A stretch of 64,000 nt of DNA from Amphiscolops sp. MND2022. Taxonomy: Eukaryota. The stretch lies in contig OZ076414.1 in the NCBI GenBank assembly GCA_964187785.1, positions 29,016,001-29,080,000 on the forward strand. Direction: 5' to 3'. The notes below the pieces were generated by a model. The model did not search any database. It saw only the letters and a program-made list of their open reading frames with translations, and had not been told where the DNA came from. The translations under genes were made by a program, and so were the position numbers. This document shows positions 26,651 through 26,923 of the stretch, one piece after another. How positions within the stretch are numbered: position 1 is the first letter of the stretch; every line of letters begins with the position of its first letter.

Positions 26651-26923
26651 TTAAGTTCTCACAATGCGAGAGAGCAAAATACAGAATTTGAACGTGTTTT
26701 GCATATATAAGAGGAGTGTTGTTCAAACACCCCTCCCATCTTGTAGCTCATTAAATCATCCAATCTGTACTCCTGTCACATGAGTATAAACTGGGCAAGT
26801 TACAGCGCTTAAGTTCTTGACCAAGTGTTGTCTGAGTTCTACTAAGACAGTGCGTCACGGTCTTGAGCTTAGAATGGAGAGCGCACTCTTTGTGTGTTCG
26901 CCTTTTATGAAAGTCTGATAGTG
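26651..26923 (+). promoter_or_regulatory. Captured copy of the host rDNA promoter plus condensed 5' ETS inside the YR element (second copy at 31072-31344)
   Basis: 26651-26799 aligns with 21909-22054, and 26799-26923 aligns with 23215-23333. Confidence 0.85.

Follow-up and report, generated by a model that had tools for sequence, protein, structure and literature searches.

Why would a mobile element lodged in an 18S rRNA gene carry, upstream of its own recombinase gene, a fused copy of two pieces of its host's ribosomal spacer, one of which resembles the promoter of the rDNA unit? We addressed this question in a 64,000-nt stretch of contig OZ076414.1 from Amphiscolops sp. MND2022 (hereafter, the window), which holds one rDNA unit: an 18S gene in two pieces, a 5.8S gene (40066-40217) and a 28S gene that begins at 42789 (Rfam). 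The 5' part of the 18S gene (25628-26070, + strand; Rfam RF01960) ends in the crossover hexamer AAGGCA (26065-26070), and the 3' part (34821-36199, + strand; Rfam) is colinear with the uninterrupted 18S of locus L008. Reading of the junctions showed that the gene is broken at ...CCAAGGAAGGCA|GCAGGCACGG by two head-to-tail copies of a 4421-bp element that we assign to subfamily E. Copy 1 spans 26071-30491 (+ strand; BLASTN and junction reading), and copy 2 (30492-34820, + strand) is 99.5% identical to it, with a 72-bp deletion near the 3' end.

The element starts with TTAGGCGCGCAGACTAAC and finishes with GACTAACAGCGCGCCTAA plus AAGGCA; the hexamer is found once per junction, at 26065, 30486 and 34815 (copy 2's at 34815-34820). 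Its ends form 10-11-bp arms, inverted relative to each other and separated by a 6-bp spacer, as in the core site of a tyrosine recombinase. The insertion point in 18S rDNA is GGAAGGCA|GCAGGC, and the corresponding empty site is seen in the uninterrupted 18S on another contig of the same assembly (L008 8724-8729). A single 18S site is occupied, by the tandem pair; the sites of L008 and L010 are uninterrupted, and the 18S of L007 is truncated upstream of the site. Apart from the recombinase gene, the ORF list and Pfam revealed no transposase or reverse transcriptase in the element, which has neither LTRs nor long TIRs.

The 28S gene of the window unit is interrupted as well: its colinearity with another unit (L009 19741-20192) ends at 45640 (region 45640-49500), and a 1132-aa ORF with an RVT_1 reverse-transcriptase match starts there (from about 45832), so the 28S insert is probably a non-LTR retrotransposon. 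A unit so riddled with insertions is unlikely to be functional. Hence the suggestion, made in the sequence-only reading, that the element re-initiates transcription of the interrupted unit finds no support, as the 28S further downstream is also broken. Near the apparent end of the 28S match, Rfam places a tRNA at 50352-50423 (46.8 bits) that overlaps this end and lies beside a tandem insertion (50340-52179), with an N gap at 52051-52179.

Upstream of the recombinase ATG, the element contains a block with two distinct host counterparts. BLASTN within the window aligned 26650-26799 with the intergenic spacer (IGS) at 21908-22054 (93.3% over 150 columns) and 26772-26923 with the external transcribed spacer (ETS) at 23184-23333 (85.9% over 156 columns), with E-values of 2.7e-59 and 5.9e-41, respectively, in a database of four loci (about 83 kb). 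The captured promoter part (26650-26799, + strand) comprises a core (26651-26714), with TATATAAGAGG at 26704-26714, and the start of the ETS, while the captured ETS part (26800-26923, + strand) is 86-90% identical to host positions 23215-23333. The two host pieces are joined at ...TAAACTGGGCAAG|TTACAGCGC (alignments A1 and A2), the block contains the motif gcatatataagagg, and the same block is present in element copy 2 (31071-31344, + strand; BLASTN). From the end of the block at 26923 to the recombinase ATG at 27095 there are 171 bp, and both features are on the + strand. The promoter part differs from the host by about 10 mismatches and a 3-bp indel. Two matching pieces of ~149 and ~124 bp, in sense orientation ~170 bp from the ATG, separated in the host by ~1.16 kb and too diverged for a fresh duplication, were what had been proposed from the sequence, and all of these points are confirmed by BLASTN and by alignments A1 and A2.

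The stretch that is missing from the element copy (22055-23214, + strand; about 1.16 kb) is the tandem-repeat part of the host ETS, with periods of 52 and 211 (TRF; self-BLAST). Both the 52-bp and the 211-bp repeat units end in TAAACTGGGCAA(G), and both edges of the missing stretch lie at the repeated TAAACT(G/A)GGCAA motif. The loss could reflect recombination between repeats or a copy taken when the ETS had fewer repeats; both fit. The host ETS segment that was copied into elements extends over 23184-23356 (+ strand), of which E retains 23215-23333; subfamily B (see below) retains about 23150-23356. The ETS part folds into a conserved hairpin of ~67 nt (A7 consensus fold, 29 pairs), which is found in the host in two copies, in E and in B, and whose 34-nt centre is invariant. 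The first host copy (22633-22708, + strand) is 87-89% identical to 23222-23296 and to the element's 26806-26881 (A7). This hairpin may act as a promoter-proximal signal or in RNA processing.

Is the host counterpart of the block a promoter? The host block nearest to the 18S gene (21908-22054, + strand) consists of a core (21909-21972), which ends in TATATAAGAGG (21962-21972), followed by the first ~80 nt of the presumed 5' ETS. The core is duplicated further upstream in two spacer-promoter-like copies. IGS copy 1 (19139-19201, + strand; 93.7% to the 64-bp core; alignment A3, TRF) is followed by 8.3 tandem repeats of 189 bp (TRF), and IGS copy 2 (21262-21333, + strand; 96.8% to the element's core and 94.5% to 26651-26722) by two 194-bp repeats (TRF); after the third core copy comes the ETS (TRF). 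This layout, a duplicated core with a repeat array after each spacer copy, recurs in a second rDNA unit (L007), where the same host block lies at 17671-17817. Sensitive BLASTN with the core found it in the IGS (window positions 19139, 21262 and 21909; L007 positions 15847, 17025 and 17672) and in E and B elements, with no copy in about 200 kb of other sequence. The last host core copy shares its strand with the 18S gene, which starts 3.66 kb further downstream (25628), and the next core copy downstream belongs to the element.

Alignment A3 compares seven copies of the core: the gene-proximal block of the two rDNA units, two spacer copies, two E elements and a B element. It delimits a sharply bounded common core, TTAAGTTCTCAC..GCGAGAGAGCAAAATACAGAATTTGAACGTGTTTTGCATATATAAGAG, with upstream flanks that are unrelated among the copies; the spacer copies part from the gene copy about 10-15 nt past the TATATAAGAG motif. 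On its left side, the element's copy starts exactly where the core common to all host copies starts. In the rDNA spacers of Xenopus and Drosophila, duplicated promoters are interleaved with repeat arrays upstream of the gene promoter. The host IGS resembles these spacer promoters and enhancer repeats in layout, an analogy of arrangement with no sequence relation. TATATAAGAGG is one base off the plant rRNA initiation motif TATATAAGGGG (PMC4691072). Given its position upstream of the 18S gene, its bounded core and the spacer duplication with repeat arrays, the host block is very probably the Pol I core promoter together with the start of the ETS.

Similarity alone has no direction, and the IGS and ETS blocks could conversely be relics of element insertions into the spacer. 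We regard this as extremely improbable: each of two host units contains three core copies, regularly arranged as promoter plus repeats, no other element sequence lies beside the host cores, the element's block joins two pieces whose host counterparts are 1.1 kb apart, and three of the five element subfamilies lack it.

The subfamilies also show to whom the block belongs. Five relatives of the exon-1 ORF were found, all in the same ENA assembly. On contig ctg183454, at least ten family members, diverged and in part decayed, form a 36-kb array in one orientation (L002/L006/L005, about 13000-43000). Because the array is flanked by minus-strand ORFs that match ERAP1_C and Peptidase_M1, it apparently lies inside an intron of an M1 aminopeptidase gene, and its structure suggests that elements insert into one another. 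Loci L002-L004, in which Rfam detected no rRNA, comprise the ctg181548 locus and the initial two-thirds of the ctg183454 array; the copies outside 18S occupy two non-rDNA loci. The ctg183454 array includes a 98.4% identical copy of E that carries the block at 98.3% identity. It also includes subfamily B, whose protein is 60% identical to that of E in exon 1 and 65% over the five exons. B has its own block at the same element position (L002 13720-14072), 234 bp before its ATG, with 89% identity to the host in the promoter part and 93% in the ETS part. Since the block is present in copies outside rDNA and in a second subfamily, it belongs to the element and is not the product of a local rDNA rearrangement. 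The block of B retains about 61 nt and 23 nt of host ETS that are missing in E and is therefore no copy of the E block; two deletions in a B-like version could instead have produced that of E. Neither sensitive BLASTN with the core nor alignment A5 showed the block in subfamilies C, F and G. In subfamily G, a ~100-nt near-perfect palindrome (L004 about 9790-9900; centre ...GAGACTAA|GTTAGTCTC...) stands in place of the E/B block.

The module is thus derived from rDNA and moves as part of the element, and E and B differ far less in it than in their exons: nucleotide identity is 86-88% in the promoter and ETS block, 65-68% in the exons and 34-70% in the introns. A maximum-likelihood tree of the five concatenated exons, E | (B,(Gl,G)) | ((C,F),C2), gives 100% support to both groupings. 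Block-bearing B is therefore sister to block-less G and Gl, and at least two events have to be assumed, whether a gain and a loss, two gains or a transfer between lineages. The left junction of the block is near-identical in E and B (A4), which favours transfer by recombination between co-resident elements over two independent captures. E and B each differ from the host by 7-14%, with the host about midway between them, and two or three changes in the host gene promoter are missing from E, B and the spacer copies (A3); hence present-day homogenisation with the host is not evident.

Such exchange bears on whether the block does anything for the element. It could be a neutral passenger: spacer sequence caught by illegitimate or homologous recombination when an element was lodged in rDNA, and then spread between subfamilies by the exchange that also makes their other non-coding parts alike. 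E and B form a mosaic in which two non-coding pieces are more alike than the block itself (99% at 26160-26245 and 98% at 29837-30060, against 65-68% for the exons), so recombination between subfamilies could by itself explain the high identity of the block, and the argument for selection on it is weakened. In addition, C, F and G do without the block, and substitutions are only slightly less frequent in the core than elsewhere in the block, a difference that is not significant. A passenger would not be expected, however, to begin exactly at the left edge of the core and include the initiator-like motif, to precede the ORF immediately and in the sense direction in E as well as in B, or to keep intact islands, namely the core and the invariant 34-nt hairpin centre, when the E and B blocks have diverged by about 12-14%. 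On this evidence, and on that from an independent system (see below), we consider a neutral passenger doubtful, though a serious contender.

The gene that follows the block (27095-29379, + strand) encodes 610 codons in five exons (27095-27753, 27887-28105, 28196-28490, 28562-28683 and 28842-29379), as defined by frame reading and by exon conservation in paralogs. The 5' splice sites of its introns are unusual: in E the introns start (27754, 28106, 28491 and 28684) with GTTAGC, GTTAGT, GTTACA and GTCAGT, with a pyrimidine at +3, and in B with GTTTGT, GTTGGT, GTTGGT and GTAAGT. A polypyrimidine tract with AG that resembles a 3' splice site (tcctttctttttcag in E; 27070-27084, + strand) ends 10 nt before the ATG, and the acceptor-like CTTTTTCAG is found 10-25 nt before the ATG in five out of five subfamilies (A5). 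In both E and B, the interval from the block to the acceptor contains donor-like GTCAGT motifs.

The encoded protein is a probable tyrosine recombinase of a divergent, Crypton-type kind. Candidate catalytic residues occur in the motifs PLR(L/I)ETF, RHK(S/T)AWS, (N/T)DLRVS, MLHSE and RQNY, which are kept in most paralog copies and vary in a few decayed ones; the histidine of the HxxR motif is N or T. Pfam, PDB, protein-feature and structure tests were run on single exons. Pfam gave no recombinase match to the exon ORFs, and a PDB profile search with the exon-3 alignment gave no match. Among the 100 nearest clusters by ESM Atlas protein-language-model features, 72 are Phage_integrase, and others include ResT/TelK, DUF3504, DUF3435 and NDC10_II. 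For exon 3, an AlphaFold model (pLDDT 76) found its best matches in Cre recombinase (probability 0.91, TM 0.51, E 0.12). These lines are individually weak and mutually consistent, and it is on them, together with the motif set, that the recombinase label given to the element from sequence can be kept as probable, the Pfam and PDB searches having added nothing to it. When an exon-3 profile was run with HMMER against 1.84 billion proteins, the matches were short genomic ORFs throughout; the four strongest and five distant ones that we inspected are unspliced fragments, with no spliced, transcript-derived protein among them. A distant exon-3 relative, P0010 (E 1.8e-9), lies in another assembly (L011; ENA ERZ25071359, ctg38031), presumably from a different organism, among nested or tandem repeats, and no rRNA was found near it.

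Cryptons, which are eukaryotic tyrosine-recombinase DNA transposons (Goodwin et al. 2003; Kojima and Jurka 2011), are a natural point of comparison; none of them is known to carry a captured host promoter. Like the element, they have a single intron-containing recombinase gene, no reverse transcriptase and no long terminal repeats, and short inverted arms surround a 6-bp crossover that is common to the target. Head-to-tail insertion, as seen in the window, is expected from their circular intermediate. The element's protein departs from them in having no Pfam or PDB match and N or T in place of the HxxR histidine. A 2024 review on rDNA and transposons never mentions Crypton, DIRS or tyrosine recombinase, and a 2022 paper on target-specific DNA transposons names only Pokey, some CryptonV (with a microsatellite target) and Dada; an rRNA-gene-specific Crypton thus appears in neither.

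What could the block do? This 4.4-kb element carries a module from host rDNA (the 64-bp core with TATATAAGAGG, about 85 nt of ETS start and the ETS hairpin), from which the repeat-rich 1.1 kb between the pieces would have been dropped at the repeated TAAACTGGGCAA motif. We propose that with this module the element may bring along a promoter and leader of its own. Transcription would begin within TATATAAGAGG or just past it and run through the ETS-like leader, and splicing at the conserved acceptor, 10 nt ahead of the ATG, would generate the 5' end of the mature mRNA. The polymerase would be Pol I, with the cap supplied by spliced-leader trans-splicing, as in the Pol I genes of trypanosomes. 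A portable promoter would suit an element that has a circular form and lands in rDNA units or at other loci. The position of the block just upstream of the ATG and its sense orientation are those that a promoter needs. Judged from the sequence, whether the block has any role as a promoter or leader is an evenly balanced matter.

The choice of polymerase is the more tentative part. The mRNA 5' end is probably made by splicing, because the acceptor is kept in all five subfamilies, and in the acoel Symsagittifera roscoffensis a leader is trans-spliced onto 30% of genes (PMC9911081). The published S. roscoffensis leader had no match in the window, with up to 3 mismatches allowed, or in any fetched locus. 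The concern, raised in the sequence-only reading, that spliced mRNA from a Pol I promoter would be unusual is eased by the acceptor and by trans-splicing in S. roscoffensis, but it persists with regard to the four ordinary introns. Against Pol I stand these introns, the AATAAA at the 3' end of B, a perfect TATA box in TATATAAG and the block-less relatives with the same gene layout. The introns and AATAAA fit Pol II better than Pol I, and as C, F and G lack the block yet have the acceptor, the family can presumably be expressed without it. That Pol I drives the gene and spliced-leader trans-splicing caps its mRNA is accordingly a tentative possibility. The Pol I-promoter reading that had been put forward from sequence holds insofar as the block is derived from rDNA, is integral to the element (in non-rDNA copies and in subfamily B), lies in sense orientation upstream of the gene and has a promoter-like host counterpart; the introns and the TATA box tell against it.

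The same features allow an ordinary Pol II promoter, in which TATATAAG would be the TATA box (canonical, at 26704-26711), transcription would start about 30 nt downstream and the ETS part would be 5' UTR, most of it removed by a cis intron or a spliced leader. The four spliceosomal introns, the GTCAGT motifs between block and acceptor, the AATAAA at the 3' end of B and the gene layout shared with block-less relatives all agree with this. It leaves unexplained, however, why the element kept, beyond a TATA box, all 55 nt of the upstream core as well as over 200 nt of transcribed spacer, and the rDNA-resident copies sit in a nucleolar setting. Use of the captured block as a Pol II promoter is unlikely.

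A third kind of function would require no promoter at all: the block might tether the element or its circle to the nucleolus, act as a chromatin anchor or enhancer, or provide an ETS hairpin at which element RNA is cut from read-through pre-rRNA. The ETS part does form a conserved hairpin that is duplicated in the host ETS, the element appears to target 18S, and roles as enhancer, terminator or epigenetic recruiter were left open by the authors who described Pokey, a transposon with a comparable arrangement (PMC3849761). Nothing in the sequence is specific to such roles, though, and the sense orientation and the position before the ATG are needed by a promoter and not by a tether, which makes a signal of this kind very unlikely.

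Pokey, a piggyBac element of Daphnia 28S rDNA, is the closest precedent. Upstream of its transposase it carries 2-5 copies of a 200-bp IGS piece and an ITS2 piece (the IGS "A" and ITS2 "C" repeats; Penton et al. 2002; Elliott et al. 2013, PMC3849761). Like the element described here, it is a DNA transposon with copies in an rRNA gene and elsewhere in the genome, and its rDNA non-coding sequence lies in the 5' non-coding region before the transposase and is far less diverged between lineages (5%) than the transposases of the two lineages (40%; PMC3849761). A role in transcription, which the authors favour, is likewise suspected and unproven. The two elements differ in enzyme (DDD piggyBac as opposed to a probable tyrosine recombinase), in target (TTAA in 28S as opposed to AAGGCA in 18S), in divergence from the host (about 5% for the Pokey repeats and 7-14% for the copies described here) and in the captured piece, which in Pokey is a set of 2-5 tandem IGS copies plus ITS2, and here is a single promoter-like core fused to ETS. 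That the same arrangement arose independently in Pokey, and that the non-autonomous derivatives of Pokey lack the rDNA repeats (PMC3849761), weighs against a mere passenger.

Two other systems are instructive. R2 lacks its own promoter and is transcribed together with the rRNA, from which a ribozyme releases the R2 RNA. The non-LTR retrotransposons R1 and R2 of 28S genes are rDNA-resident like the element, and their expression depends on Pol I transcription of the rDNA unit, whereas the element is a DNA element with a promoter copy. The VSG and procyclin genes of trypanosomes are coding genes with an rDNA-type promoter whose transcripts are capped via the spliced leader (PMC8748868), which is the mechanism proposed here. 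These are, however, intron-poor genes of a protist with uncoupled RNA processing, and ours is an animal gene with four cis introns.

The arrangement is thus already known in kind from Pokey; what is new here is the enzyme class, the 18S target and the core-promoter-like piece. If the block is used, two unrelated enzyme classes, a crustacean piggyBac and an acoel tyrosine recombinase, have each taken an rDNA control sequence. This would be the second independent case, after Pokey, of an rDNA-dwelling DNA transposon that recruited such a sequence, and it would suggest a general strategy for nucleolar living. The case is cleaner than that of Pokey, as what was captured is bounded like a core promoter and takes in the likely start site. 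The full scenario, in which an animal tyrosine-recombinase transposon took over a Pol I core promoter and ETS leader for its own gene, with trans-splicing to cap the mRNA, is rather improbable on present evidence. If the Pol I reading were true, the recombinase gene would be the first protein-coding gene of an animal to be driven by Pol I, and whether Pol I can make mRNA in an animal becomes a directly testable question. The analysis also provides a candidate rDNA promoter and 5'-ETS hairpin for an acoel.

Several other features of these loci deserve mention. ITS1 of the window unit (37128-39990) contains eight 358-bp tandem repeats with 99% identity; L007, L008 and L010 have about four. L007 (1-20192 of ctg183087) is a rearranged rDNA locus in which the 5' part of a 28S gene is followed by about 3 kb of unassigned sequence, an 18S gene without its first ~590 nt, and an ITS1 joined straight to the IGS. 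Coverage of the rDNA-bearing contigs is 100-123x and that of two other contigs 86-89x, from which the rDNA units look like dispersed single copies.

Within the element, the heptamer GACTAAC occurs 19 times per copy on the + strand and 6 times on the - strand. Inverted pairs adjoin both element ends, so that it is a likely recombinase binding motif. Outside the element (26071-34820), 9 of 10 occurrences fall one per 177-bp IGS repeat (TTTCAGACTTGACTAAC; 12886-14395), and no homology beyond the motif was detected. We considered and rejected an origin of the element's GACTAAC-rich repeats from these IGS repeats, as the best local alignment lies in low-complexity sequence, off the motif, and scores 30, with a shuffle maximum of 29.

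Of the two non-coding pieces that are more alike in E and B than the block is, the 86 nt at 26160-26245, near the 5' end of the element, are 84-87% identical in other subfamilies and contain a pair of 21-bp direct repeats, GGGCAAAAT(G/T)GCGCAATAGCG, that flank a short palindrome; they are probably a cis-acting site of the element. The other piece, at 29837-30060, in the 3' part, is a GC-rich stretch of 224 bp that overlaps a 102-aa ORF (29865-30173) with no Pfam match. Between the recombinase gene and this piece, ~185 nt past the stop codon, an A-rich tract of the form A7 G A9 G A6 is followed by a perfect hairpin with a 16-bp stem and then seven T (29563-29636). In B, the AATAAA lies inside the A-rich tract and the second hairpin arm is missing; the region could be a 3'-end signal of an unusual type.
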